64,000 nucleotides of DNA from Magallana gigas. Lineage: Eukaryota. The position numbers and the translations under genes are program-made. The stretch is taken from NCBI RefSeq assembly GCF_963853765.1, contig NC_088861.1, positions 40,796,001-40,860,000 of the forward strand. The letters run 5' to 3'. Of this stretch, positions 4,957-37,945 are shown piece by piece (the first letter of the stretch is position 1; every line of letters begins with the position of its first letter). Below the pieces are notes generated by a model. That model did not search any database, had not been told where the DNA came from, and was given only the letters and a program-made list of their open reading frames with translations.

Positions 4957-7900
4957 ATATAAGCTACGTCTATCGGCACTGAACTATCGATTAGTGAAAA
5001 AAAATTGGACATAATAAATGCAGAAGTCTTATTGAAAGTTACATGAACATGTAATCTTGCATTTTGAAGAAAAAGATTGTAAATAATGTTTACAATGTAT
5101 ATATAATAAATTATTTCAACGATTATGGTTTATAAAAATCGCATCACAAAAATACAACGGTACGCATGAACAAAGCAATTGAATAAAATTGTAGATTCAG
5201 TACGTTTTTTTTTTTTTTGGGGGGGGGGGGAGTCTGTCGTATTTGATACATTTAATTAGGTGTGTACGAGTATGTTTAAACAATAAACATAAACAAAAGG
5301 TAGCGATTAATACCGAAAAGATTAACGTAACCCGCATTCTGTAATGTGGCTATCTCTATAGCCCGCATGTATCACCAAAAAAGCATTTTATTGTTTATAT
5401 GTACATCTTTCTTTTAATGAATTAATGAATTGATTTGATCGTAATAAGTAAGTGAAAGTCACTAAATTATTGCTAATGTACACCAGTGCGTTAGATAAAA
5501 GCTGTAGCCAAGCGTCTTATATGGGAATTTGAGTTTGACATTATCATGATTAGTTCGTGCAATCCGTGATATTTCTTAGGTTTCTGAAGATTTCGACCGA
5601 TCGATAAACTGCATGGTTAGAACTTGACCGAGGAGATTTCAGTCTCGATACAGCTGTGAATTACAATAAATTTTCGTAAGAAATAGAGGGAATCATACTT
5701 AGTGGATGTAAATTTAAATCTATAAATATAAGATGCCATTTTTTTGTAAAATCTTTTCTCCACATTTTTGTAGTTGGAACTTTCCAGTGAGACAATCAAA
5801 GCAATTTTTTTCACCAGCAATTTCATAAGAATAAAGTATTGGTAACGTACAAAAGAGAAGAGAAATCGGGAAAATAATTTAACACAATATAATTCCGAGT
5901 TTCAAAAACAGCTATTGATTTTAAACTTGCATCAGAACTATAAAGATACTTAAAATTTAATATCGGTAAATATGCGATAAAATTTCCGTGCAAAAGGTTG
6001 ATAAAAAAGAATAAATATTTCTCTTTTTGAAAAGAAACTTGTGTTTGCCCCAAAATTGTGGAAACATAGGCATCGATTTTGACAGTCTATATCTTTGTTA
6101 CATGTTTGCTAATTTGCCTCTCTGCAGCTAATATAACTTTGATGCATTTAAAGGTTGGGGAGAAGATGATATTTGTTTTCTTTAAATATCCTTTATCTAT
6201 CTATTTATCTTATTTTTTTTGGGGGGGGGGGGGGGGTTGCATGTGGATTTATCGGAAGTGTTTCTGGATTAGCTGCAGAACTTAAAATATATCTGGATAT
6301 TCAAAATGTTTTGCTCTCTTCTGTTAAAATTGTAAGAAATCTAGAATTGTAGAAAATTATTATTTAATTCTACTTCAAACAATTAAAGACGGTGTGAAAG
6401 GAACCATTATGATAGAAGAAAAAAAATGCAAAACAAAATTTGACGTTCGTGACGTCGTGACGTTTTCGACCAGCTACGTCAAAGTCGTGTTAACATGTCG
6501 TCTTAAAATTGTCATAAAATGCTTAAAACACATAAGATCTTGGATATCTTTGTATATTTGTATTCAGAAAGAGTTGACAAATCGGAATTGACAAAAAAGT
6601 AAGTTTGTGAAATTTTGACCTTAAGGGCCCTTTTCTCGTGACGGCAGTCATATAATTATTGAAAGTCTCCATTACTTTTTAGTAATATAATGGCATATTC
6701 TATAAAATTCTACAATTTGGATGAATTGTAAATGTATACATACCGTTACATGGTGGTAGATTTTAGTGCAATAGAATTGCTTTTTAATATATTCATAACT
6801 GCTTAATTATATCATTCTGTCACCTTATTTTGAATTCCCAATTGGATTTGAACTTAGAACCATAGAACTTACCTTATCTTCCCACTTGGATTTGAACTTG
6901 GAATCATAGAATTCATTAGAGCCTGCTCCAACTCTGGCTATTGCTTTCAGGAGATGACGATTTGCTACAGAGCTGTTGGTGAGAGAAATTACAACATTGT
7001 AACTTCTCATTATGCTTGCAAACTTAAGATTGTTTTATGTTTCATAAATATTATCAAAACATAGAAAAGTTCCACCAATTTGAGGCCAATATTGCAGTTA
7101 TTATGTTGCTATTTTACAATTATGGCTCTTCCAAATCATGACACATATTGTAGTATAGAAGAAATGAAACAATTCAATACTTTATCATTAAGTATTGGTA
7201 AAAATATTTCTAGCAAATATGGAGATTTTTAATCCAATAGAATTTCATGACTCTAAGTATCTTTACTTGACAAACAATCAAAACATGTAATTCTGACAGC
7301 AAAAGGATCAGAGACAAATTTGACATTGCCCTGTGCATTACACTGTGATTTTCTCTACTCTTTTCCTTCTTGATGGGACGCCATTCCATCACAGGTATCC
7401 CTAACTACTGGCATAAGCCAGCTAGTACCCATTGAAACTAGGTTGACCGAAAAAATACAGATAAAGTGCCTTGTCTAACAACACAGCACACAACATCAAG
7501 TGACCAAAGCAGGCTTGAACCAGTGACCTTTAGGTTACTGGCTTAACATGTATGACCACTGAGCCACATACAGAGCTTAACTCGTTCTTTACATACTGTA
7601 GATTCCTAATTACAAGCGAGGAGTTAATATCCTTGTAAAATCGCGAGAAAAACATCTTGCGAATTTTAAAATTTCGCTTTCATTTTTCGGACATATGTAA
7701 AATATAAGTAACTTTGACTAAAATTCGGCATTCGCGATTTTATGTTCTTGCGATTTAGTGGAAAACGGATGAATCACGGAATTAGGTACTCACGTAAAAT
7801 AAGGAATTTATAGTACCTGATTCCTATAGTGAAGACCCTTGTGTGTTGAGAGTTCTGGGATATTTTGACCAGAGTATCCTCATCATTGTTGATATAGCCA

Positions 7901-8712
7901 TCAGAGAAAAGGAAGATGTTCCTGGTGGAACTCTCTGATTTAAGGAGGTAGTAAGAGTGTAAAGGCCTGCAGAGTTCAGTATTACCCTGGTTTGCTTGTA
8001 ATTTCTGCAATAAATGTCAACACATTCATAATTTTTTTTACAATGTTTTCCTTACTTTTGTGGTATATCTACATGTATATGTATTTGCATATGTTTGATT
8101 CCGGAAATTTATAGTCCGTCTATATTTTTGAAAAAAAAATATTGATGCCTTGTCTATATTTATTTAATTTTTTTCATCTATAAACCTTCAAATATCACCA
8201 TCATCGGTCTCTCAACAGACTCTCTTGATGGTCTTCAGACCAAGTTCTCCCCTCTCCCTAGCTTCTTCAGCAATAATTAAGATGATAGATATTATAATAT
8301 CATTTCTCTCTCTTAAGTTTTAAAATGAATAGAATTTCATACAATCTCTGTTATCTATGTTCAATATTTCATTTAGTCTAAGATTAATAAATTTGCAAAT
8401 CTGCGTTTTATTTTTCGACATTTTGTAATTCAGAGGCAAACTGAATATAATGGACCTGAGTTGGTGTTTAAAAGATGTTTTTGTCTTGTTTTATTATATT
8501 ACACGTCTTTTCATGACTACATGCTTGTACATGACTAGTACAAATACATTTGTTTGTGTAACTGGCAGACCTGAATATGCTGCCTTGCTGTCTGTACATT
8601 GAATTTATTGGCTGGTAGACTCGATGGGAAAAGTTCTCTGAATGCTGAAAAGACAAAAAACCATAAAATTTTACAACTACATGTACCTAATAATTTCCAT
8701 TTTGGACTAGCT

Positions 8713-8783
<71 letters not shown>

Positions 8784-11700
8784 AACTATACCTGTCCCGA
8801 ATGAGACCACATTGAACCTCCATGTTGGATCCATGAGATGTAACACAAGGAGAGCAGCCTTTTTGGCATCACGGTGGGAGGAGTCCTTCATTGAGTTGGA
8901 GCTGTCAATCATCAGGATGACCTCAACCTCTGACTCCTCATCAGCCTCAAACTCCGGGTAAAAGGTCAACATGCATGCCTAGTAAAGTCACAAGCTGTCA
9001 GATTGACTGTCACTTTAGGTTATTTGAATGTTCAAAACTTTAAGATCCAAACCAAGCTATAGAGCTATAACAAAGCCCAATGGTGAGGACTTACATAACT
9101 AATGCCTGATGTCTATTTCAATAATGTTTATTCCATTAAGATACCAGTAATATAATTTTTCAAAATGTATAAAAATGTAAAATGTAAAAAATGTAAAATG
9201 TATAAAAATGTAAAATGTATTTTAAATGCAATACTACGCAATCAGCTTTGCCTCCAAAAAAAGCTGCTGTCTTGTGGACAATGAACTTGCTCTCGTCCTC
9301 TTGCTGGATAATGGGTAAAATATTATATTTCATCTTTCTCTGCTTTCTAAATTTTATCTTTATTTAATCATCATTTTTACAAGCAACCCAATTGTAAATA
9401 TAAATTAAATTAAAACTATTCCCTGAGAATTCCATATATTTCCAGACTCACCTGTGACCCTCCTTCATCGGACTCGACCCACATCCGCGGAACGTGGATT
9501 TCTGCTAGACCGATCAGAAGCTGGAATCCATCCTCCAACATCTGATTGTCTTTCATCTGCACCACGGCCTTTGTAGCTGTCCTCTGTGAATAATATAATT
9601 AGTAATTTTGTAGTGTTTTTAATACATAGGAAAATTGCCAGCTTGCTTTTAGAAGTTTTGACAATGTACATCTTATTTCAATATGTGCAATGTATCTTCT
9701 CTTCCTATCACAAGTTTAGCCTACATGTGAGTTAAACAGAATAATCCTGTTACAACATAATTATAACATTAAACCAAAATCATTACATGTATAAGAAAAG
9801 TGGATAATGTCCCCCTCATCCAAGCATTCCCCCGGATGTGATGGATGAGGGGCATTCTTGGAAGACAGCCTGAGGCTGAGGAGTATCAAGTAGCATTATT
9901 TCCTGGCTATTATGCTCGGGATCGCCCTTCAAAAAAGCTAAAAACCTACCTGGAAGTGACGTCACATACCGTATAAATAGTGCTCCCACTGTGATAAACA
10001 CTCATAATTTTAAAGCAGATTTATTGTCAAATATGTATTTTAATTTGAGGTGGGATAAACAATTCTCAAAACCCATACAGGGAGGGAACCTTGATACTCC
10101 TCAGCCTCAGGCTGTCTTCCAAGAATGCCCCTCATCCATCACATCCGGGGGAATGCTTGGATGAGGGGGACATTCTTTTCATCCAGCCTTCGGCATATCG
10201 GAGTATCAAGTAGCATCTTCAAAGTATTTGACAATAAATAAAAAATCCTTCCAAATAGAGAAGATTCTCAATCAATGATATAAATAAACATAGACCATTT
10301 TAATAAATCAACTTTGGTTTCATCATGTGGAAACACAAAATTGCTTGATCATCTTAGCCACAAAACACATCAAATGTACCCATTATTTTCCCCACCAATT
10401 TCTTTAATAATTGCGCATGTCCATATTGTGGCTGCATGATTAATGTTTTCTCAGAAAATAATGTTTTAAAACCATTCTGCCTCATTTCTCTGTGATATAA
10501 ATAAATACATTGTTTGTAAAATCCAAACTATATCTAATTTTCTGTCTGTAAGATGTTAATAGAAAAAAGAATGAATTGCATTCATTGAAATGTCAGATTT
10601 TACTGTCTGATGTATATAGGGTACATATACACTTATAATACAGCTATAATGTAATCAAATGTATGATCTTCTAGCTTCCAATGTAATGTAGAAAACAAAT
10701 GTTTTCTTCCTTGAATATAAAGTACCTGTATCATATTCATGTATGATTAAGTTTTGCAACATAACTAAGGTACAATGACCCTCTGATCAGAAAAATATTC
10801 ATTCTTCATGAATTACCTATATGTCAATCATTCTTTTGTAAACTAAAATCATATTTATATTACATGTATGTCCTATTTTGTCTAGCTCATATAGCTATAT
10901 ATTAGGATAAGTTAAGTTTTCTTTGAAACTTTAGATATTATCAGTAAAAGCAATATAGTATTCACTTGTGTACAGAAGGATGTCAGGTATAATCTTGTCT
11001 GATGTCTTTGAACATCAACGTTCCTTCCTTTGAAAATTCTTAAATCAATATCTATGACTTTCCTGGTATGTGGTATTTATACAAAAATCAAAATGCTAAT
11101 CTTTCATAACACATCCATTTTCAATTGATATATTAATACACTGTACAACCAAACTCTGCATGAATTAATTAGTTTTAAGAAAACTAATCTCAAAACTTGC
11201 AATCTTTTCTAAATTTGATAATTATATCTTCAATATGATTTAAGTTAATATAAATGACCTATAAAGATTTTAACCTCTAGCTAGGTACTGTTTTCTCTAA
11301 GAATATATGGAATTCACATTGCATTGTCCATAAATCTAATATATGTATCATAATAAACAATCTATTACATGTATTTACATATACATGTATATTCATGGAG
11401 TATATATAACTTTTCCCTATAAAGTGGGAACATTGTATGACATTAATTTTTTGTGTATTAACAATTTATGACAAGATATGAAATCTAATATTAAGTTCTT
11501 TGTAATGTCATTTTTTGGTCGTCAATATATCTATATTCATGTAATCACAACAAGACCAACAATTGGGAACTGTAAACAGAACTATTTTTGCCCCATGTTA
11601 TTTTCTTAGATTGTAAACAGTTTTGTCCCAATTAAAACTTGCCCAGACAAAGCTTTGTTCATCGAGAGACAATGTAGGGCATTGTAATTCGCCTATAGTC

Positions 11701-14700
11701 TTTATTAATTCACCCACTGGCAAAAAGAGGAACAAATGTGTTCCCTGTAATCTTTCTTGGAATTTATGAATCAGATATGTTATATCTAGTGTAACATTAT
11801 TTACATATATGCCAGCAGCTAAATATGAGTAAACATTTCTTCAATAGTAAATATTGTACTATAATATCTTTGTCCTTTGATCGAGTGATATGATTAAACA
11901 CAATCACTATCTTGAAATAACTTATTATAATCAAATTCCATAATATGAAATAAGCGAAAGTATAAATCTTGTTAATTCATATATTCAATCAATATAACAC
12001 AATTAGAAAATACAGAAAAAGAACTTTCTCAATCTTTTGTAAAGAAATTCAATCATCTTTAATATTTAAAAGTTTTTCCATCATTTTAATTTTCTGTTTC
12101 AGCTACTACATAGCCTTATTTCCGATTCAAATTCTAAATATTACCAGAAACGTTCTAAAATCTGTTTTAAATTTGTAGTATCATATATACTAAACACCAT
12201 TAGCGAGTAAATACATACACTGTAACATTTGTCTTTTCATGAAGACTTCAGTTATGATGATAAGTTCTAAAGAGATAATCAATAATTATTCACATATACT
12301 GGAAACCATTCCAATGCATCAACTAATACATATATGGTAAGTATATAATAAATGTATGAAAATCAGCTTGTTCTTTGCTTTTTCTCAATATGAACATTGT
12401 AAACATGGTACTTGCTAGTGTATCGTAATTCCAAATTAAAGTTACTCATGTAACCCATCTTGTATCAAGAGAATCTCAAAAAATCAAATTTCAGTGTCTC
12501 TATAAATATATAATCAAACATATTCTCATGTTTCAGTATATTCAATACTCTATTCAATAACTTATAACTGTTTATTGCCAATTTACCATTCAATTATATC
12601 TCTTCCATTGCAATATTCTATTACAGATGTATTTTTACATTTATAATCCTTATCACTGGATTTTCCCTAAAGAGGAAGGTTGTAAAACAACTGATCTCCA
12701 TTGACAATTTGTCTTGGTATAAAATTGCTTGCATTTCATGATCTAGACAGGCTAGTATATATAGCTTTTATATTTGATCTAATTCTACATGACATATGGT
12801 AAAAATTTAATTCACCAAATTCTTAGGATAGAAATAAAAGATGGTCACATATAGTCTCTTTCTTTAATATATACCATACTCTTTCATTTCAATCTAATTG
12901 AACATGTACCATACTTTGGTAATAAGTTTTAATGTTTATTGTTATAACAAATAGGGTTATAGTGAACATTGTATTATTTATGGATTTTCATTCTCATCAC
13001 ATTGATCCTCTTTCACTCTGAACCTTTTCTTTTGTATTATATCTCAGGATTTCAGCAATGTATCAAACAACTTCATTTCTTTATGTCATACATTGTCATA
13101 ACAATACTTATCAAGCCTTAGTTTCCATGAAGTCGATCTTCATTTAAATTAGCTTAAAATAAATTCATGTATTGTGTCTGAAATCAAATCATCTAAGTCA
13201 ATAAGTGTTTGGTTCTTTGTTCCTCAAATCATTCCCATGAATCATATAATGATGTGCAGGTTTATGACTTTTGTAATAATTATGGATGCAAAAAACAATT
13301 AAATAGTAAAACCATATTACTAGTAATTATTTGACTGAATACATGTATATTACCGGTACATGTACTTGTTTTAAAAGTACTTTTCAAGTCAAGTATCCTA
13401 ATGTTTGTTTGATTTCTCTCTATTACTAACTTAGACATATATATGTCTTTCATTCAAATTTTTTAATCAATACCGGTACTCCTGTTTTCAACATTCACTG
13501 TCACTTCAGTCAAACTTTATAACTCTTAACTCAAACTTTATATCTGAATAAAACTGCACAAACAATTGATTTGATTCAAAACACTGCATAAATTGTCTTT
13601 TGCACCCATTCCAAACAGTGATCAATTGAATTCTCTAATATTTTATGAATCAGTTCGTCTTTCAAAAAATTTATGATTCTCCAAGATTTTAAGTTTCTTT
13701 CTTCCAAACTTCACAACATGTATAACTTCGTCTGTACAATGTAATATAAATAAATGTAATGTAGACAATCATCTTTTCTGTGACAACAATAACTTGAAAA
13801 CACCATATATTATGTGGTATAGAAAACATATGTATATGTAAGCTTCTCATCCCAGAATTAAAACATTTTACAGCCAATGTATAAATGCTCTGAGAAGCAG
13901 AATAAATTCAAGTTCATTTGTGCAATTTCTTGTTTGGTCTTCAATGACACCAAATTATATTACTGATATCATCAGTTGTACTTATTTCAATCATGTGCAA
14001 ACTGATGCCTTGAATACTTCTTTTTTTTTTTTTTTTTTTTATGATCAATAAACCAACATTAATTTCATGTAAAATATTGCATCAGCCTGTTCAGATGTTC
14101 TAAATTGACATCTTCTTTCGCTACATGATTTTGTACAGTTGTATTATTAACCTGACTGTTATTTTGTTCAAACTTCAGACCTTTGGTCATTTTACTATGA
14201 TCACTACATTTTGTAAATTATATGTCGTAAACCAATTATCTCCAGTATCAGTCAGCCGTTAAGAGAAATTCCATCTCTTGTCTCATTTATATCCGTGATA
14301 TTGAGATCAATAAAACCATAAGAAATCTGAACACAGCGTGTTCTAATTGTACTGTACTATTTAATATATATGTACACAGCGTGTATATTATTCAACTTGC
14401 GATGTAAATTTTTTTTTTTATAGTAGTCAAATTTCTGAACACAACGTGTTTTATAAACGTACTATCAACCAATACACAACGTGTACTGTAAAACTTGCGG
14501 TAAAATATATTCACGACAAAATTCTGAACACAGCGTGTTCTAATCGTGCATTCAACAAATACACAACGTGTATTGTACAACTTGAGTTGTAAAACCACAT
14601 GAACCATGTGTAAAACGAAATGCACGGATTATCAATCCTTTCAAACCAAGACTTCGTCATTGGTAGATTTAATTCGTTTTTAAAGGCTTTACAAACCTTG

Positions 14701-17700
14701 CAACTAAGACCACGTCTTAGAAAATTTATTAACACCGCAATAACCATATAACCGACAAGGGCTCATGTCCCGATGTCGCCAGAAAAAATATGAGTGTTTA
14801 TCACAGTGGGAGCACTATTTATACGGTATGTGACGTCACTTCCAGGTAGGTTTTTAGCTTTTTTGAAGGGCGATCCCGAGCATAATAGCCAGGAAATAAT
14901 GCTACTTGATACTCCGATATGCCGAAGGCTGGATGAAAAGAATGTATCTATAGATTACCTTGGAGAGTACTTTATGCGTGGGACACTCCAGACTCCGGAT
15001 GTCAAAGGGCATGTCTACATACACCTGTACACTACAGCAGGTGTTTCCCACCTGTACTGTATCCCAGTCCTATAACACGGAGTAGACAGTAATACAGACA
15101 TATAACAAAGGGCATGTCTACATACACCTGTACACTACAGCAGGTGTCTCCCACCTGTACTGTATCCCAGTCCTATAACATAGAGTAGACAAAAATACAG
15201 ACATATAACAAAGGGCATGTCTACATACACCTGTACACTACAGCAGGTGTCTCCCACCTGTACTGTATCCCAGTCCTATAACATAGAGTAGACAAAAATA
15301 CAGACATATAACAAAGGGCATGTCTACATACACCTGTACACTACAGCAGGTGTCTCCCACCTGTACTGTGTCCCAGCTCTATGACAAAGAGCAGACAGAC
15401 AGTAAAACAGAAAATTATTTATCAATAATATATAAACAAAGACTATCTCCCCAAAATGGCCACTAGGAAAAATAATGGTTCCACAGTGTTAACACCAAAT
15501 GACCATAAAAATCTATATTTTATGTTCATGAGTTATCAACTGAAATATAGACTAGACATATAGCCAATGGCACTTGTTTTTGATATTCACTGCTTTATTA
15601 AGAACTTGTCTGCTACAATTAAACATTAAACCTTGTCTTTGAATTCTGGTGCGTCAACAAATTTTTGTTTCCATGGTGCCACGCTGCCTGGGAGACGGAA
15701 GTTGATGAGATCACCGTCCACCTGTAGCTCTGTGACATAGGTGATCTTGATGACCACCACAGCCCCCGTGGGGAGGTTCCCCACGCTGACCGTGAACACC
15801 TCCTGTAACAAAGAAAAAGTCCGCCAATTGTTAAATATGTACGTGATAAATTCTAAATCAAGTCTATGAGGAGTAAACTGATATAAATACATCCTGATTC
15901 AACTAGACACTTTTAGTTGAATCAGGATGTATTTATATCTATTCTCTTTTTAAACTTAGCTTTCACAATATCCCAACTAGCTTTTTGAGAAAAATGCAAT
16001 GTTGTTTGACCTTAACCTTGCAATTGCCAATTACTCAAATTACCATGGTTCAAGGTCATGACACAATGACATAAACAACATTAACCTTGGTTCCAAGTAT
16101 GAGTATTTGCTGTTTTAATGGGAATGGACCGATAGACAAACACAAAAACAGGAGAGGATAACTCTTAATACATGTACCTCTTTGTAAATGTATGAGGGGT
16201 ATGGCAGTGAGGAAGCATAAAATAACAATCAATCTCATGACTACGGTCAGATTCATTCAACAAAATCGGTCTCTCTGTCTCTTTTTTTTTTAACCTTTTT
16301 TCAGTTTTACCTTCATGAATGTCTAATATTTTTTTAAGGCATAAAGGAATATGATCATTTACCCCTACCTTCAGAATGTTCACCATACTTACTGCATTAT
16401 CTAACAACTTATTGTTAATCATGCTAAAATGAAATTAAATTTGATTTTAAAAACTGCATCATGTATACCGGTGTTTCTTTGTCCTGGTCCATGAGGTACG
16501 CCCCATGCCCCTCCTGGACGGCCCGCTTGTATTCCCGGTGGGCCGTCTCTTTCTCCTTCACCTCCCCAACGATGTGTTTCCCGTTGATAAACGCCTCAAA
16601 GCCACACACCGCCGCCATTTCATCCAGCGGGAAGACGTACTTAGCCTCCAGGGCCTGGTCACTATTGTTGTGGTACTCTTGTAACACCACCACCTGACAA
16701 CCGAACAAAATACTGATGCAGTACTTGTACTACAAATGTTGATACATCAAAATCAGTATGTGTTTGCCACTTCAATCAAATTTTACTTGTCAATGACCAA
16801 GTTGCATTGATCATGATCATCGATTTCATATTTTAAAAAGACTGTAAAAAGTTAAACACATTTGAAGTTATCATTAATTATTGAATACAATTTTACCCTA
16901 CTGTAGTGTCTGATTGACTGCATGTGTACAAGCATATTAAATGTAATCAATAATCAAAACTTTTCTTAATTAATTTGAGCTGATAAAACTCTGCTAAAAA
17001 ACCCTCAATTAAATGTTTAACACCGCGCTATGTTGCGTATCTCTTTATTTTTAAGGGAATGTTTTAGGAATAGAATGTTTATCAAATCTAAGGGGAGATA
17101 AAATTATGAATTCAAAGTTACTTTTTTCAACTTAAACTGTTTACCTCCCCTGCCAAGTCGATCACTTTAGCTCGGATATGGGCTTCAAGTAGAGTAACAG
17201 GGGTGTTGTCATTAGAAACCAAGCCAGCCTTGACCTTTGTCAATGGGTTTGTGACATCATGTACATCGCTGATGTCTGCAAAATCAACCAGCAAAATATC
17301 TTGAAATTTTATCTATAATAGTTACTGTTCTTAAATTACTGTTTAGTCAAAATAACACAGATGAAAAAAAAAATTTCATATACATTTTCATTTTTTGTTT
17401 ACTTGTATTAATACATTTGTAGGTATACAACTATACATGTATCTAAATTAAGTCCTATTCTCAAATTAAAAACATGAACAGCCAAGTAATTTCTTATTCC
17501 ATGTTATTGTTTTATTATAATTTTATACTAAAAAGGCTTGAATTGGGCATTATGAGTGATTCTCTTTTGTATTTTAAAATATTTTCTATCACTGACCAAT
17601 AATGGTCTCTTCTGGAGTTTCCTCCCTTTCCAAAACCTCTTTTTCAACAGAAATCTCGACAGGAATCTCGCTGCCAATGGTGAACTCAACGAGATAACTC

Positions 17701-20700
17701 AGCATCTGTTGGTCTGTGTTGTACACAACAAACTCATCGTCCTAAAGCCAACATGATGAAAACATTAATTTTGTGAGTTATTATTGATACCAAATTCATA
17801 CCAAGAAACATAATAAAAGTTAAAATCAGTCTTTATCATGATCATAAGTTCATTTTTGATGGTTCAGCATAGTGCAAAAATCACAAAGAAACATATGCAT
17901 GCCGTGAAGTACAAAAACCTGATAAAATTAATACAAAATAATAAAGAGCAATCAAACAAAAATTTTGGTGGTAGAAACATTCATGTCAGGCAAATACATG
18001 TAGCATCAGGGGGCCAGGGCGGCTTTTTTATCACAGCAAACATTTTTTTTTTTTAATTTACATAGAAAAAGTAAATTGAGATGGAGTTGGCCCCCACTTT
18101 TTTGGGAGCATGTAAAAAATTGTATTGAAAGGAAGGAAATTAACAGTGAAATTGCTGTTATATGAAGTTATACGTACGATATGCTCTGAATTTCAAAAAC
18201 TCCCATTATGTTGAGCATTAAATATCAGAAAACTTCATTTTTAACAGATGAATCCCCCCCCCCCCCCAACAGTAAAATCCACTTACATCCCTAAAATCTA
18301 CTGACCTGAAAACTTCATCTCTCCAAAGTGATGTCCACTAAAAAATCTACTCACCTGAAAGTCAGACTCCACCCCCTCTGTGGCAGCCACCCCATGGACG
18401 CTGTGGTAGCCACTGGGTGGTTCTGTAAGGTCCCACTGATGTTTGTACACATCCAGCGTGGTTCCTAGCGCCACCTGGCTGACAAGCATCATCCGTGTGT
18501 TTCTGGTTTTGCTTGGTTTGGAGTATTTTATGCTCGTACTACAAAGTTATGAGAGAAAACATATGGGTCAGGAAATAGACTTTAAAAATGTCATGATCAT
18601 TAATACAGGTGAATTTTGATAACTCTTATCAAACTTCAGGGGACCTTGATGAATCTTTTTTTACTACAAAAAATTGCATAAGTATCTCCTGTCAAATTTA
18701 TGTATCACAACAAAATAACTAGCAAGAAAGCCATCGAAATTTACCATCATCATGACTGTGTGAGTTTTAAGAACGTAATCATTATGATTGAAAACACACC
18801 TTGCGGAGCTTGCAAAATAGATCCCATGTCCCAGCATTCCTGGATCAGTTCTCTTTCCTCCGTAGTCATCGACGACGACCTTTGGCATCAGGAGACCTCT
18901 GTAATATTATATTAACCATAACAACACTATAATTTCTCTCATTACAACAAAAACTGAACATTTTGGACAACCAGGTAATTAACTAGTTTTTACCTGGAGA
19001 GAATTCCAACAAAGTTTTCTGCATTGGAGGCATGAAACAGCAGCCTGGAACTCAGGTCTGAGCGGAAATTCTCACTCTCTGAGGGCCGATGTATGGCATA
19101 TACATTCTGAATTCTCATTTCTTCCCCTCTAAAACATTACATAATCCATAAAACAGATAATTAGAAGATATCCTCAAATGTAATGTTTATGAAGAAAATA
19201 ATGTGTCATCATCATAATTCAGGTTTTATTGTACCATCACTGAGGTCACATGACATCATCAGTGAGGGCATTTCACCAATATTCATGCCAAAATCTCTTT
19301 TTGACTGAGTCGGTGAGTATTTTTAAATTATTTTGAAAGGCTTTACATTTTGAATGATCAGATATCTAAAATCCTGACTCTGATAACACCATCAACGACG
19401 TTGAACTCACTGTTTCAGGTTGAGGATATCTAGGACCTGTCTGGGTAGGCCTCCTGATACGTGGGATATCTGACATCTGAGGGCCTTGTACTGAGCCTCG
19501 GCATTGCCTCGCGTCGACCAATTCGTGGCCTCACTTACTGACACCACGTCCTTGATTAGCTGAAAGGCAACAATATAAAATGTTTAATTGATAATTACAA
19601 AGAGAAGTAGCCTAAGGGTAAATACAGTGTTTAACCAAGTAGTGATAGAAGTCAGATATCTACACTCATATGTCATAAAAAAACAGATTTATTATGACAT
19701 ATTATGAAAATACACATGGATCTTTATCAATTCCTTTGTCCCCTGTAATTTGGAAAAAGAAGTTTGACAGCAATGGAACTTTTAAGTTACAAATGTATTA
19801 CTAAGACGATTCAAAAAATACAGGTCTGGCAGCTTTTCAGTTATTGTTTTGAGAAATTTTTCAACACTGTTGTTTTTTTCAATTAGCCTAGTACCATGAA
19901 CTTGTCTGTACACTATTCTCTGTGTATAAATGTGTTGACATTGCGGTGTATCTGATGAACTGAAATAATGGCATACCTCATGTAAGACATAGTGGTATAC
20001 AAATGTATAATACATGACATGGTGGTATACCTAGCATAATACCATATCTGATATATAGAATACCTGGCATAGTGAAATAGACTCATACCTGAAATAGTGG
20101 CATACCTGAGTGACATAGAGTCATACCTGACATAGGTCGAGTTTCCTGGCCAGCCATGACATGGAGAAGCTGGTTGTCCTGTATTGAGGTCGGTGAGGGA
20201 GGGCCGTGTAGAACTCATCAAACAGAGCCTGGAGTTTGCTGTTGTCTGATTGGCTCTCCTTCATCTGGGTCAAAATGGCTGTAGCCTTCTCAACCTTTGT
20301 GTCAAAATTTAATTTTGAAAGAATTTTATCTAATTTTAGGGAATGCTTACAGGAAAATTGATGAATTTAAGCTTTCAAAATAAACAAATAAGACTTAGTA
20401 TTACATATATCCTCTGAGCTGTAGATCTCTTTATAATAATTATATCATGGATGTCAATAATTGAAATTAAAACTGCATGGTTCTTTTAACCTGCCTTTCC
20501 TATCAACTACAGTAGCATGAGTACTCTTGAAATTATTGCCAGCTGACACAGTATATTTTTTTCTAATACAAATGGCCCTGTAAATTTTGTGCTCACCTGG
20601 TCAAGTTTGATGGACTGTAGTGGACTACTCAGGACTTGCTCGATCTCTCCCCCTGCCTCCCGCCAAATGTGCTGCGTCAACTCTGCCACAGGAGCAGATA

Positions 20701-23700
20701 ACTCTGTCTCTTCCATTCCATACTCCAGTATTAGCTGTTTTATTTGTGATTAAAAAAAAATGTAACATTATGAATATCCTCCAATTCGAGTTGTGTTTGC
20801 AGTACTTTTGAAAAAAAAAGAAAACGTTCAGCAGCTAATCAGAGTTGAGTCAACAATGTTATTAACTATGAATGTAATATAATAGGCTGAATCAAAACTC
20901 GTACCTTCTGGAGCTGTTTGGTTCCAATATTCTGACAGGGAGGTTTGTGACAGACATTCATGCCACTCGGGGGGTCCTTCATCTGTTTATAGAGGGCGCT
21001 GTACACACACAGAGCCTCCTCTGACGTCTGCACGAAGCGGAACTCCTTGCTTCCACATTCTGCTTTATTCTGGGGAATCAAAATACAAAATACATGATTG
21101 TACTTCATTTAACCAGATATTGTTATTTAATTTAAATCTGCCAAGTTGTAAACAGATTAAATCAAAATCTGCATGGGTTTCTTTTACATACATTTTCTAA
21201 TTTTCTACCTCATTGTAATATATATAGCATGAGGATTACAATTTTTAATAATTCAGTAATTTTTTGTATTCTTTGAAAACAATTTGTATGCGCATGGCTT
21301 CAGTAAGTTTCAACAGTATCTATTGTTCCAACACCGCAGTCTCACCTGTAAATCCTCTACACTGCCTCTGTGAGAACAAACACAGAATCTCGGTGTGGCA
21401 TCCTTATTTTCAAGGGCAGTAACTCCTCTAAAAGCACAAATTTCCAGAACTCCAAACTGTGTGGTGTGAGTTTTCTTGTCACCAATCTGTAATCATAGCA
21501 ATGATTAAACATAGGAATGTGACAGTGCTATGTAGTATAATGAAATTAAACTCTTTAAATTTGTAATTATTAACCTTTTATTTAAATGCTGTAAAGCTGA
21601 ATCAGAAAATGTGCATTTATTTAATGATTACTGTAAACGTACTACATTTGGCTGTGTATTCTATTTAGCGCTATTAGCAGAATGCAGCTTCCGTTAAATC
21701 ATTTACAAGTACATTGCCAAATGCCATTCATAAATGTATATGAATAGTCAAATTCAGAAATATGCTAATTCAAATACAAGCCAACTTGTTCAAAAACTAA
21801 TTTCCACCAAATATCGTACAAACCAAATATAATATGATTACAGTATTGTTGAAAAATCCCAGACTCTTGGATAAATATTCACTTCAAATATAATGAACTA
21901 ATCTATACAACTCATCAAATGTACTAGAACATATAAGAACTTAGTCTACAACATATACATTTTTTTCTTCATGTCATTTTTATTAACAGATGTTAATTTA
22001 CCTGAAACATGGCAAACTTTGCAACATCGCTTTCATCGTCAAATGGTGGCATGTTTTTGTCTTTCTCCTTCCATGCTTTCACAGACTTTGGGTTAAAAGT
22101 AAAAAAAGTTTTCCTATTCTTTCCTTTTGGCTTCAACTCAGATTTTTCAGCTTCAAAAGGAAAACAGTTAAATTACTGCATGATCCAGAAAAACGTTGTA
22201 AGATCTGTCACAGATTTCTGTGTTGTCAGTTTTTGAAAGTTTCACAAGATTTATTGCATGATACAGTTTACTGTGGAATCATTAAAATTCGTGGGGGCCA
22301 ATTTTCGTGGATTGTTTAAATTTTACAGGTTTGTGGGGACGTAATTTCGTGTATTTTCGTATACATGCAAGAGGAAGATGACTTTATAGCCCTAATTTAT
22401 TAATTCGTGGGGGATGTTATTTCGTGGATGAGAGGTACCCACAAATTCCACGAAAATTGAGCCACCACGAAATCTAATGATTCCACAGTAATTTTGGTAC
22501 ATGAATGTCAAACATCGGTACAATGTACATTTGTAGATGTATGTACCTGTACGATAGCAATGCGAGTTGAAAGCCTCAACCACCGTTTCTGTATGATTTT
22601 CAAAAATAAGCTTTGCATGATATCATTATTTTGAATTTTTCCCCAAATCCCATCATGTTGAAGATAATAGAGAGGATAAATTGTACATGTACATAAACAT
22701 GCACATGAATGAGATTCCTACTGTATACAGGGTTATTTTCGCCCCATGTAACTTTCGCCCTTTTTACACTTGCAAGCTTTTTCGCCCCGTCTTGAATTCG
22801 CCCAGATGCAGTTGTGTAATCAGAGATATTAATTGCAACATAGAATTCGCCCAGTCTTAAATTTGCCTTCTGACAATGAGGGCGAAAGGGGCAAAAATAA
22901 AACGGGGCAAATATTTCCCTGTATACAGTATTTTATGAAAGTCGGTCCTCAACATGTGATTTTTTTAATAAAAACAATTCAGCACAGGTGCTCTTTTTGA
23001 TTTGACAACAATACAGCAGGGCATGGGTTAATCTTTATTGAATGATTTTCACTTAAAGTGAAATAAAAGTAATGTGTACAATGGTAGAGGGGGGTTACAT
23101 TCTTATTATTATATTAAATATGTGACCCTAGATGAGACCCTGTATTTCACCGACCTTGACTTTTGTCAAAAAGGTCAGGGCCATGACACACCCTCAGGTC
23201 ATGAGCACTCTTTGTCCTCTTTTTGAACTTCTAATGACGTATGATCAAAAATGTAATACAATCTGATTAAAATCAGATCCTCGATCCGCTCCATGTTTTT
23301 TCTATTGTCACTACTCATGTAGCGACAATTAAAAATCAAGGATCTGATTTTAATCAGATTGAATTGTAATACATGTATAGACATACAGAAAGACATGATA
23401 ATTCCTACAAACCCCCAGACTCTGTTTGCTATATACATACTTTATAATTAAGGATAATGATGTTTGTGAAAAAACTGAATTATTTTTTTTTTCAATTTAA
23501 CTTAACCACAACCCCCTTGTAAATTTTTTCAGGTTTGTTAACTTACCTGAAATTTTGCCTGAGCTGAATTCCCGTGCTTTTGTTTTTCCAACCAGAAGGT
23601 AATTGTCTGTGTCCAGTAGCTTCCCTTGACTGATACAGTCAAAAATAAAATCCAGCGAAACCACAGGGATGCAGAACTTTGCTGCCATTTTACATTTATA

Positions 23701-24156
23701 GCTGACGTCTGCTTTCTCTGCATCATTCAGCACAACATGTGTTCTCTAGAGGTATCAAAAAAATCAAAGATTATACAACTTAATCATAATTAAAATAATA
23801 ACAAGCATTCTGGGAAAAATGTATAAGCAATACATGTCCCTAGCTGCTGACAACACCAATTGTCATTTTATGTGCTAAATAGATTTTGAGAGCATTTGAT
23901 CAAAATTTTTTACAGGACGAACTTGACAAGTAAATTATAAAAACAAGTCTTTTAAAATTTCTTTATCATCTGTTGATCTTAAAAAAACGATCTCTTAAAA
24001 AACTCCAACACGATCTTACGTTCTTAATTATAAAGCTAAACAGAAAATTTTAAATCATTTTCTCACACATAATGTAAAAAGTCTGGAAATTGAAGAAGGG
24101 ACATAATGATTTCACTGGTATGGGACTACAACCGAATTTGATAAATGTGTAAATAG

Positions 24157-36957: not shown

Positions 36958-37698
36958 TCAGCCTGATGTTAGGGCGCTCAGGAAAATGGTGGGCACAAGA
37001 AGCGGTAGAGAAAGTACCCCGGCTCCAAACAACAGAGCCAAATTTATCCCTGGTCTCTGTGTAAGGGTTTCCTTTGATTCAGAGATAACTGTAAAAAGGA
37101 ATACTTATTTTTGCAAGCATATAACAGTTTGGATCTACACTGTTGTAACGATTTTAAGAAATGTATGCACCATCTCCACAAGCATTGTAAAATAACTAAA
37201 GATCGATATATCAATTTCTTTCCACAAATTGCACAAATCAGATATATAGTTGTAGATAAGAAATAATGATGACACTTTACATTTAGGCCTTAGTCTTGTT
37301 CTAAAATCACCCTCACAATATTTTTCTTCATGCCTAGGAAACCCTTCCAGTCACCATTCTGACAGTCACCGCGGTAACTGCATTGTACATTCGATTCACA
37401 ATCATCTAAATCAGTACAATTAATAGATATTATTTCACTGAACAGGATGTGTTGTATTTTGAAAAAAAAGAGAGAAAATATATGTTACCGAGACATGGAG
37501 GTGGTCCGTAGGTGTGCGCAGGACATACACATTTTCCATTTTCTTACTACGTGAACACACATTACGTTTTGCACTCGTTGTGGTCAGTTTCTCCCAAATC
37601 ATTACTCTCGCCTAAATTCAGTTAATCTGCGACGTGAAAAAGTAATAAAATTTGTATTAAACAATTAGCTAATTTAAAATTGCCATTACCCGCAAATT

Positions 37699-37785
<87 letters not shown>

Positions 37786-37945
37786 TCCTGATACTTACCC
37801 AAACATCCATCGCTTTTAGTAGTACTGGAGATAAGTCGTAAAATCTACTTTAACCTTCACAATTAGCTGCGCAATTGTCTTTTTCGCCACACTTGGTATC
37901 GTGATTACCATAATCCTCCTCAGAAGCCATCGTTTAACAAACAAA
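36958..37945 (-). pseudogene. Inverted degenerate copy B1 of the EGF-family gene
   Basis: Four exon homologues in order with splice sites; last exon 36958-37088 open (VISESKETLTQRPGINLALLFGAGVL...TSG*); EGF exons have stops, indels and lost cysteines. Confidence 0.8.

Follow-up and report, generated by a model that had tools for sequence, protein, structure and literature searches.

The window analyzed here, a 64,000-nucleotide stretch of the genome of the oyster Magallana gigas (C9:40796001-40860000; positions below are counted from its first base), contains a PARP4-like gene on its minus strand. One intron of this gene is interrupted by a 5.1-kb insertion at 9806-14945, in the same orientation as the gene, which very probably is a non-autonomous DIRS1-like (tyrosine recombinase) retrotransposon. 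The intron runs from a donor at 14958 (CAAG/gt) to an acceptor at 9584; its length is 5375 nt, of which 240 nt remain if the insert is left out. An earlier note on this DNA had placed the insert 13 nt from the donor, in an intron of ~240 bp once the insert is removed, and both statements hold.

Terminal architecture of the element

The element is framed by inverted terminal repeats (ITRs) at 9880-10011 and 14784-14915 that match at 131 of 132 nt, with one mismatch; the perfect 127-nt inverted repeat previously noted at 9880-10006 and 14789-14915 is the core of this longer pair. The sequences outside the ITRs are non-identical, one being 74 nt long and the other 30 nt. Inward of the ITR on the 74-nt side lies an internal complementary region (ICR), composed of two halves. 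As had been claimed, 10090-10174 is the exact reverse complement of 9806-9890 (85/85) and 10170-10216 is the exact reverse complement of 14899-14945 (47/47), and the whole of 10090-10216 is an inverted copy of the two joined ends, with both halves exact and overlapping on ACATT. The junction formed by joining the ends reads gaaaagAATGTccccctc, and the reverse complement of the same sequence sits in the ICR. The sense strand of the element is the minus strand of the window, with the 5' end at 14945 and the 3' end at 9806. The following parts were delineated:

9806-14945, minus strand: whole non-autonomous DIRS1-type element; 5135 nt inserted plus one common AATGT, as delimited by the empty-allele joint and by the family copies
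14946-14958, minus strand: intron sequence between the host donor (CAAG/gtaatc) and the element, 13 nt
14916-14945, minus strand: outermost 30 nt at the 5' (left) end; forms, with 14899-14915, the complement of the left ICR half; 93% identical to the autonomous element and invariant across copies
14784-14915, minus strand: left ITR, inverted repeat of the right ITR
10217-14783, minus strand: AT-rich non-coding interior, ~4.6 kb
10170-10216, minus strand: left half of the ICR, complement of the first 47 nt at the 5' end (47/47)
10090-10174, minus strand: right half of the ICR, complement of the last 85 nt at the 3' end (85/85); the circular junction ACATT (CATT across the family) is common to both halves
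10012-10089, minus strand: spacer between the ICR and the right ITR, 78 nt, with the conserved block TTGACAATAAAT.TGCTTTAAA
9880-10011, minus strand: right ITR, inverted repeat of 14784-14915
9806-9879, minus strand: right extension (rE), 74 nt past the ITR at the 3' end; part of the 85-nt ICR match

Several candidate signals were recognized within these parts. The left ITR holds TGACGTCA followed by TATAAATA, pointing inward, which could be a promoter; a scan of the left end with a bacterial-type promoter model is uninformative for a eukaryote. The sense-strand AATAAA within the spacer block, at about 10025, is a candidate poly(A) signal. No match to Rfam and no tRNA match or tRNA-like primer site was detected in the element. 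An 11-bp stem (9812-9822/9840-9850) is predicted in the right extension, and its sequence is kept in five relatives; as a supported structure, this 3' terminal hairpin was rejected because covariation is absent and the fold z-score reaches only -1.46, and it remains a lead only. Each ITR also carries, on one strand (14843-14851, plus; 9952-9944, minus), CAGGTAGGT, a near-consensus 5' splice site, and on the opposite strand ACCTACCTG, which resembles the 5' end of U1 snRNA. The copy at 9952 is on the sense strand of the PARP4-like gene, within the intron. In the ITR comparison, this motif is missing from the ITR of the autonomous element described below.

An empty allele in other oysters

Public oyster sequencing runs, kept as contigs, that contain the left flank of the insertion were examined, and four runs from four studies were compared with the window over 9150-15105. 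In three of these (X1, X4, and X16), a contig joins 9805 to 14941, skipping 5135 nt, with five letters that fit either side of the joint. The fourth (X2) is empty at the same site, on an allele that also has a small indel at 9780-9805. The empty allele that the earlier note had predicted, ...gtggatAATGTatctatag..., is therefore present in contigs of all four runs. The empty-site contigs are unbroken from 9495 or 9478 through the joint, and their depth is close to that of a neighboring single-copy contig (26.2 vs 21.5, 64.4 vs 58.9, and 129.4 vs 129.9). In the X2 allele, the 26 intron nucleotides 9780-9805, adjoining the insertion site, are replaced by 15 nt, CCAAGAAAAGTGGAT.

The empty allele has a single AATGT to which exactly 5135 nt were added, that is, the insertion occurred without target-site duplication. 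Because the empty allele is exact, it fixes the boundaries of the element, excludes any duplication beyond the common AATGT, and demonstrates that the insertion is polymorphic. The insertion at this locus is thus both polymorphic and recent, in agreement with the recent mobilization that had been suspected from the sequence.

A dispersed family with constrained ends

The genome (564 Mb in 29 contigs) was searched with an end probe of 411 nt comprising the right extension, ITR, spacer, and ICR; of the 89 first-look candidates, 49 were left unscored. The 411-nt end is complete at 94-100% identity in at least 21 loci, mostly paired with a second ITR ~5.1 kb away. Copies with the same ITR/ICR layout, for which the earlier note had proposed to look, were found at at least 20 other loci, and the ICR layout of the window copy recurs in 17 other copies. 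BLAST comparison of the whole element showed that the fetched loci share the full interior at 92-98% identity, and 13 copies are full length (5087-5149 bp). A search of the genome with the interior brought the family to a total of ~25-30 loci, fragments included. The flanks of the copies are unrelated, with the sole exception of one pair discussed below, and segmental duplication was accordingly rejected as the source of the copies.

These observations bear on another explanation of the architecture, namely, that two independent short insertions combined with a local template-switch rearrangement, or an assembly artifact, produced the repeats at this locus. In its favor, no source other than the assembly shows the locus in its filled state. 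The dispersed copies refute the two-insertion origin: the identical 5.1-kb unit is present in at least 13 full-length copies with unrelated flanks, and the deletion-free empty site fits exactly the AATG rule that holds for the family. Taken together with the artifact version, this explanation is scarcely credible.

By substitution distance, the family splits into three subfamilies (0.6-1.9% within and 3.1-3.9% between subfamilies), with the window copy clustering with L037 (0.79%) and L038. Variation is unevenly distributed along the element: the diversity across copies is 0.42% in the right extension, 0.48% in the ICR, ~1.5% in the ITRs, and ~3% in the interior. The ends and the ICR are letter-identical in nearly all copies, and 9 of the 18 copies combine perfect end-ICR matches (85/85 and 46/46) with an identical, fixed 131/132 ITR pair. 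Such near-invariance is what purifying selection on cis-acting ends, regeneration from the ICR in each round, and recent insertion of most copies would give. A protein-less element with complete ITR/ICR ends multiplied to ~25-30 copies while its ends stayed under clear constraint.

One copy of 10.3 kb was considered as a possible autonomous partner and rejected because its long open reading frame (ORF) belongs to a nested long interspersed nuclear element (LINE) of the apurinic-like endonuclease (APE) and reverse transcriptase (RT) type. This LINE, at L031:3461-7267 (C1:57687757-57691563, minus strand), has an open 1269-aa ORF (Exo_endo_phos, RVT_1, and zf-RVT) and a 257-aa ORF upstream of it, and its presence accounts for the length of the host copy.

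Junctions and target choice

In the orientation of the window, one junction of the element reads flank/AATGTccccc and the other ...gaaaagAATG/N, where N is variable, and the ICR reads as the reverse complement of gaaaagAATGTccccc. AATG (CATT in the sense of the element) is present at both junctions in 17 of 18 copies. The 5-bp AATGT/ACATT that had been described as common to the two ends does mark both boundaries at this locus; family-wide, the overlap is the 4-nt AATG (18-21 copies). AATGT is found on both sides here because the target happened to read AATGT, the fifth base, T, belonging to the window-left end of the element. The presence/absence polymorphism fixes the boundaries to the base and shows integration at 4-nt homology without duplication.

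The targets share more than this motif. Among 21 targets, A is enriched upstream of the junction at positions -4 (14/21, P 0.002), -2 (19/21, P ~1e-7), and -1 (17/21, P ~1e-5); no base preference was detected downstream of the junction in the same 21 targets. The favored target is A-N-A-A-AATG. The two copies with related flanks, L045 (C2:14.29 Mb) and L047 (C4:33.96 Mb), belong to different lineages and occupy the same position of a dispersed, ~80%-identical repeat: their right flanks are ~80% identical, and the likeness begins 3 nt from the junction. Because this likeness starts at the junction, the pair represents two insertions into the same site of another repeat, which hints at target choice beyond AATG.

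Autonomous relatives and the probable helper

The end probe also matches, at 76-78% identity, four loci of the L034 lineage, of which two are coding and two degenerate. The first coding copy, on C3 (L034:501-5347, 4847 bp), has ITRs at 574-693 and 5198-5317 and an ICR at 783-910 that consists of the reverse complements of both ends. On the strand that places the ICR 3', it encodes a 455-aa gag-like protein, RT/RNase H (RVT_1, E 3e-23), and a 348-aa tyrosine recombinase (YR; Phage_integrase, E 1.6e-12), with the pol frame split into 561 + 140 aa. The second, on C6 (spread over L033 and L056), matches the C3 copy at 98.9% identity, and all three of its frames are open. These comprise 455 aa, 701 aa with RT and RNase H (RVT_1, E 7.5e-24), and an overlapping 348-aa YR in which the motifs ARAQTL, HSIRG, and RRFY can be recognized by eye. 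A Phage_integrase match of E 1.5e-12 was also recorded for these relatives. The 701-aa frame also has a weak Dam-like match (E 0.0037, below the Pfam threshold). Both autonomous copies are bounded by CATT...CATT, and their length (4847-4860 bp) compares with 5087-5149 bp for the non-autonomous copies. The strand of their ORFs relative to the ICR establishes the minus-strand orientation of the window element, as had been proposed.

These elements share with the window element the layout, the CATT junction, the TATA and AATAAA blocks, and the approximate length (4.85 vs 5.14 kb); unlike it, they encode gag-like, RT/RNase H, and YR proteins, and their interior is dissimilar. Homology is confined to positions 1-434 and 4972-5139 of the element and is graded within these segments: 93% identity in the left outer 30 nt, 92% in the left ICR half, 89% in the right ICR half, 89% in the right extension, 63-65% in the inner ITRs, and 53% in the spacer. 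Even at this low identity, the autonomous ITR keeps the blocks TGAC(G/C)TCAC and then GTATAAATA, and the spacer block is common to the two elements. The earlier note had proposed to look for a YR-encoding relative with the same ITR; a relative with the same layout and the full set of gag-like, RT/RNase H, and YR genes does exist, with ends only 77% identical overall and an ITR that is the same only loosely.

From these comparisons, the L034/C6 lineage, the closest by its ends, is most likely the helper, an assignment that is uncertain. It is also possible, if clearly the less probable outcome, that the classification of the element is correct and the enzymes come from a different autonomous DIRS1-like lineage: a sister with a 68% identical YR, which has elements near C5:11495240 and C8:10594038, for example; one missing from the assembly; or an extinct one. 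The modest identity of the ends to L034 (77% overall and only 63-65% in the inner ITR) points in this direction, and there are other lineages to choose from. More than 100 matches to tyrosine recombinases are present in the genome, and in many of them the frame is open over 350-1300 aa, so that several lineages of YR elements, DIRS-like and others, coexist in the oyster; moreover, more than half of the end-probe candidates (the 49 of 89 mentioned above) were unscored. Against this, the four next-best matches of the end probe all belong to the L034 lineage, with no other lineage among the scored candidates, and the parts that a helper would be expected to recognize, namely, the termini, ICR, junction CATT, TATA block, and AATAAA block, are exactly the conserved ones.

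The non-coding interior

The interior (10217-14783) has a GC content of 26-31%, and an ORF scan detected no frame longer than 78 aa in it. The claim that the interior lacks an intact ORF is therefore upheld, the more so as no ORF is conserved across copies: conserved small ORFs were considered and rejected because the five longest interior ORFs are broken in other subfamilies. A single 61-aa ORF is open in 11 of 13 copies, which is taken as chance in young copies. Residual coding sequence was likewise rejected, given that blastn and tblastx comparisons with the autonomous element are credible only at the ends; the interior gave one 48-nt blastn match (E 4e-5) and short, low-identity tblastx fragments. 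Nor does the interior appear to have been captured from elsewhere in the genome, a possibility rejected because its sequence is found only within copies of this family. The window element encodes no gag, RT/RNase H/methyltransferase, or tyrosine recombinase genes. Because the autonomous relatives that share its ends do have such genes, the element was classified as a non-autonomous derivative rather than an autonomous member of the group.

Classification and mechanism

The layout, the dispersed family, the coding relatives, and the empty allele all support the earlier proposal of a non-autonomous DIRS1-type derivative. Specifically, the window element is, with high probability, a non-autonomous DIRS1-like retrotransposon that combines complete cis-acting parts with an unrelated, non-coding 4.6-kb interior and is mobilized in trans. 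The family is mobile and must borrow its enzymes; it is new, but represents an already known kind of mobile element rather than a new type.

Under this classification, the element would be transcribed from the left ITR, and the RNA would be copied to cDNA by an RT that an autonomous DIRS1-like element of the same genome provides in trans. The ICR would then template the exact restoration of both termini, and the tyrosine recombinase would insert the joined-end form by crossover between the junction AATG (CATT in the sense of the element) and an identical AATG in the target, preferentially in the context A-N-A-A-AATG. Such a crossover would leave no target-site duplication. Two observations bear, though only indirectly, on RNA/cDNA replication with ICR-restored ends: the perfect end-ICR identity in young copies, and the invariance of the ends across subfamilies that are 3-4% diverged. 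The RNA intermediate, the circular or joined-end intermediate, and the helper lineage are what we infer from the analysis as a whole. Replication via a circle, as stated in the earlier note, follows the published DIRS1 model, which is a model only and is not experimentally settled (PMC7192593).

The same recombinase could, in principle, act on DNA directly, with the element being excised and reinserted in the manner of Cryptons, without reverse transcription. Crossover at short homology without target-site duplication is typical of YR DNA transposons as well, and the RNA step of the retrotransposition scenario is a putative one. Nevertheless, DNA-level movement appears very unlikely. The ~25-30 copies with perfect within-copy end-ICR identity fit copy-and-paste propagation with ICR-templated end repair; only DIRS1-like retroelements have an ICR architecture, and RT/RNase H is among the proteins encoded by the relatives; and in DIRS-1, the ICR is needed after cDNA synthesis (PMC7192593). 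Furthermore, the ends are in inverted orientation, so that a crossover between them would lead to inversion and not to excision of the element.

Several points weigh against the proposed trans-mobilized retrotransposition. The closest autonomous elements are only 77% identical over the 3' 430 nt, and no coding copy with near-identical ends was found among the scored end-probe candidates; the true helper may be another lineage or one absent from the assembly. The RNA, cDNA, and circle-junction steps belong to the inferred part of the scheme, and no experiment has demonstrated full trans-mobilization for a DIRS element (PMC7192593). It is unexplained why a helper-dependent element keeps a 4.6-kb non-coding interior. 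Finally, the contigs show that the empty allele is present and cannot prove that the filled allele is absent, the latter having been seen only in the assembly.

Comparison with known DIRS elements

DIRS1-like elements are routinely annotated in bivalves. In mollusks, the described representatives (LgDIRS1-3 of Lottia and AcaDIRS1-2 of Aplysia) have ITRs, two ICRs, a right extension, and ATT ends, and integrate without target-site duplication (Piednoel et al. 2011; PMC3266345). The ICRs of DIRS1-like elements overlap on a 3-bp circular junction, the same trinucleotide is found at both ends, and integration proceeds by recombination with an identical genomic motif; in the mollusk elements, the ICRs measure ~39-46 and 67-88 nt, the larger half being 86-88 nt in four of the five listed elements (PMC3266345). 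The window element resembles them in its ITRs, adjacent ICR halves near the 3' end, right extension, ATT ends (here CATT), and lack of target-site duplication, as well as in size (~4.7-5.8 kb in mollusks) and in the length of the ICR halves (47 and 85 nt beside 39-46 and 67-88 nt). It differs in having no gag, pol, or YR and an interior of unrelated AT-rich DNA, in the overlap of 4 nt instead of 3, and in the right extension of 74 nt compared with 46-49 nt.

The replication model for DIRS-1 reportedly goes back to Cappello et al. 1985. In DIRS-1 of Dictyostelium discoideum, the ICR is essential for retrotransposition, acting after first-strand synthesis, and the RT acts in trans; most of the extrachromosomal cDNA is single-stranded and linear, and attempts to amplify the circle junction failed (Malicki et al. 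2020; PMC7192593). Like DIRS-1, the oyster element has inverted termini that are non-identical, and its ICR contains adjacent copies of their outer parts. Unlike it, DIRS-1 is autonomous, inhabits a host from another kingdom, tends to target existing DIRS-1 copies for insertion, and has ICR halves measuring 33 and 55 nt. A complete trans cycle has not been demonstrated for DIRS-1, and the oyster family implies that it occurs in nature.

Helper dependence, retention of the terminal cis sequences, a long non-coding interior, and polymorphic copy number are shared by the oyster family with TOC1 and with the large non-coding derivatives of long terminal repeat (LTR) retrotransposons (LARDs). The LARDs differ in having LTRs and a DDE integrase. 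TOC3, a coding relative of TOC1, belongs to the PAT-like type and has split direct repeats in place of ITRs and an ICR. TOC1 itself, from Chlamydomonas, is a non-autonomous DIRS-order element (PMC9940879). A phrase search of the literature on non-autonomous DIRS elements returned only a mention of this element, and neither a large non-coding DIRS1-type derivative with complete ITR/ICR nor an empty-site polymorphism of one was found to be described in the searchable literature (exclusive of Repbase).

DIRS1-type elements are the least understood major class of retrotransposons, and neither their integration step nor their full action in trans has been demonstrated experimentally (PMC7192593). 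The present family delimits the cis sequences sufficient for mobilization and supplies a target-site rule. A more far-reaching and tentative proposal is that an RNA with only ~170 nt of cis sequence at the 5' end and ~430 nt at the 3' end might pass through the entire DIRS1 cycle in trans, from reverse transcription through ICR-templated end repair to YR integration, the 4.6-kb interior being held near the autonomous length by a size or packaging constraint of the DIRS machinery. If this is the case, the family, which is still segregating in oysters, would serve as a natural system in which to map the crossover site of the YR (AATG) and the target rule (A-N-A-A-AATG).

The host gene

The host gene was analyzed by an exon-by-exon Pfam search of the minus strand, which yielded BRCT_2 (23500-23745), three PARP pieces (18993-19136, 18301-18546, and 17592-17741), two VIT pieces (16427-16729 and 15629-15898), and a VWA-type piece (8538-8978). 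The VWA-type match, the PARP piece at 17592-17741, and the VIT piece at 15629-15898 are below thresholds, as is often the case for short single exons. The order BRCT, PARP, VIT, vWA on one strand corresponds to the architecture of PARP4 (vault PARP), and the gene is classified as PARP4-like from its predicted domains. In carriers, the element is a 5.1-kb, sense-oriented structural variant 13 nt from a splice donor of this gene and may alter its splicing or termination. Directly upstream, in the sense of the gene, of the exon with this donor, a 103-bp unit is repeated 3.8 times at 96% identity (15003-15397), each unit repeating the acceptor and the start of that exon. Long (TC)n/(GA)n runs are present at 8718-8781 and 37680-37800; the former lies beside or within the VWA-type segment and reads (ER)n in that frame.

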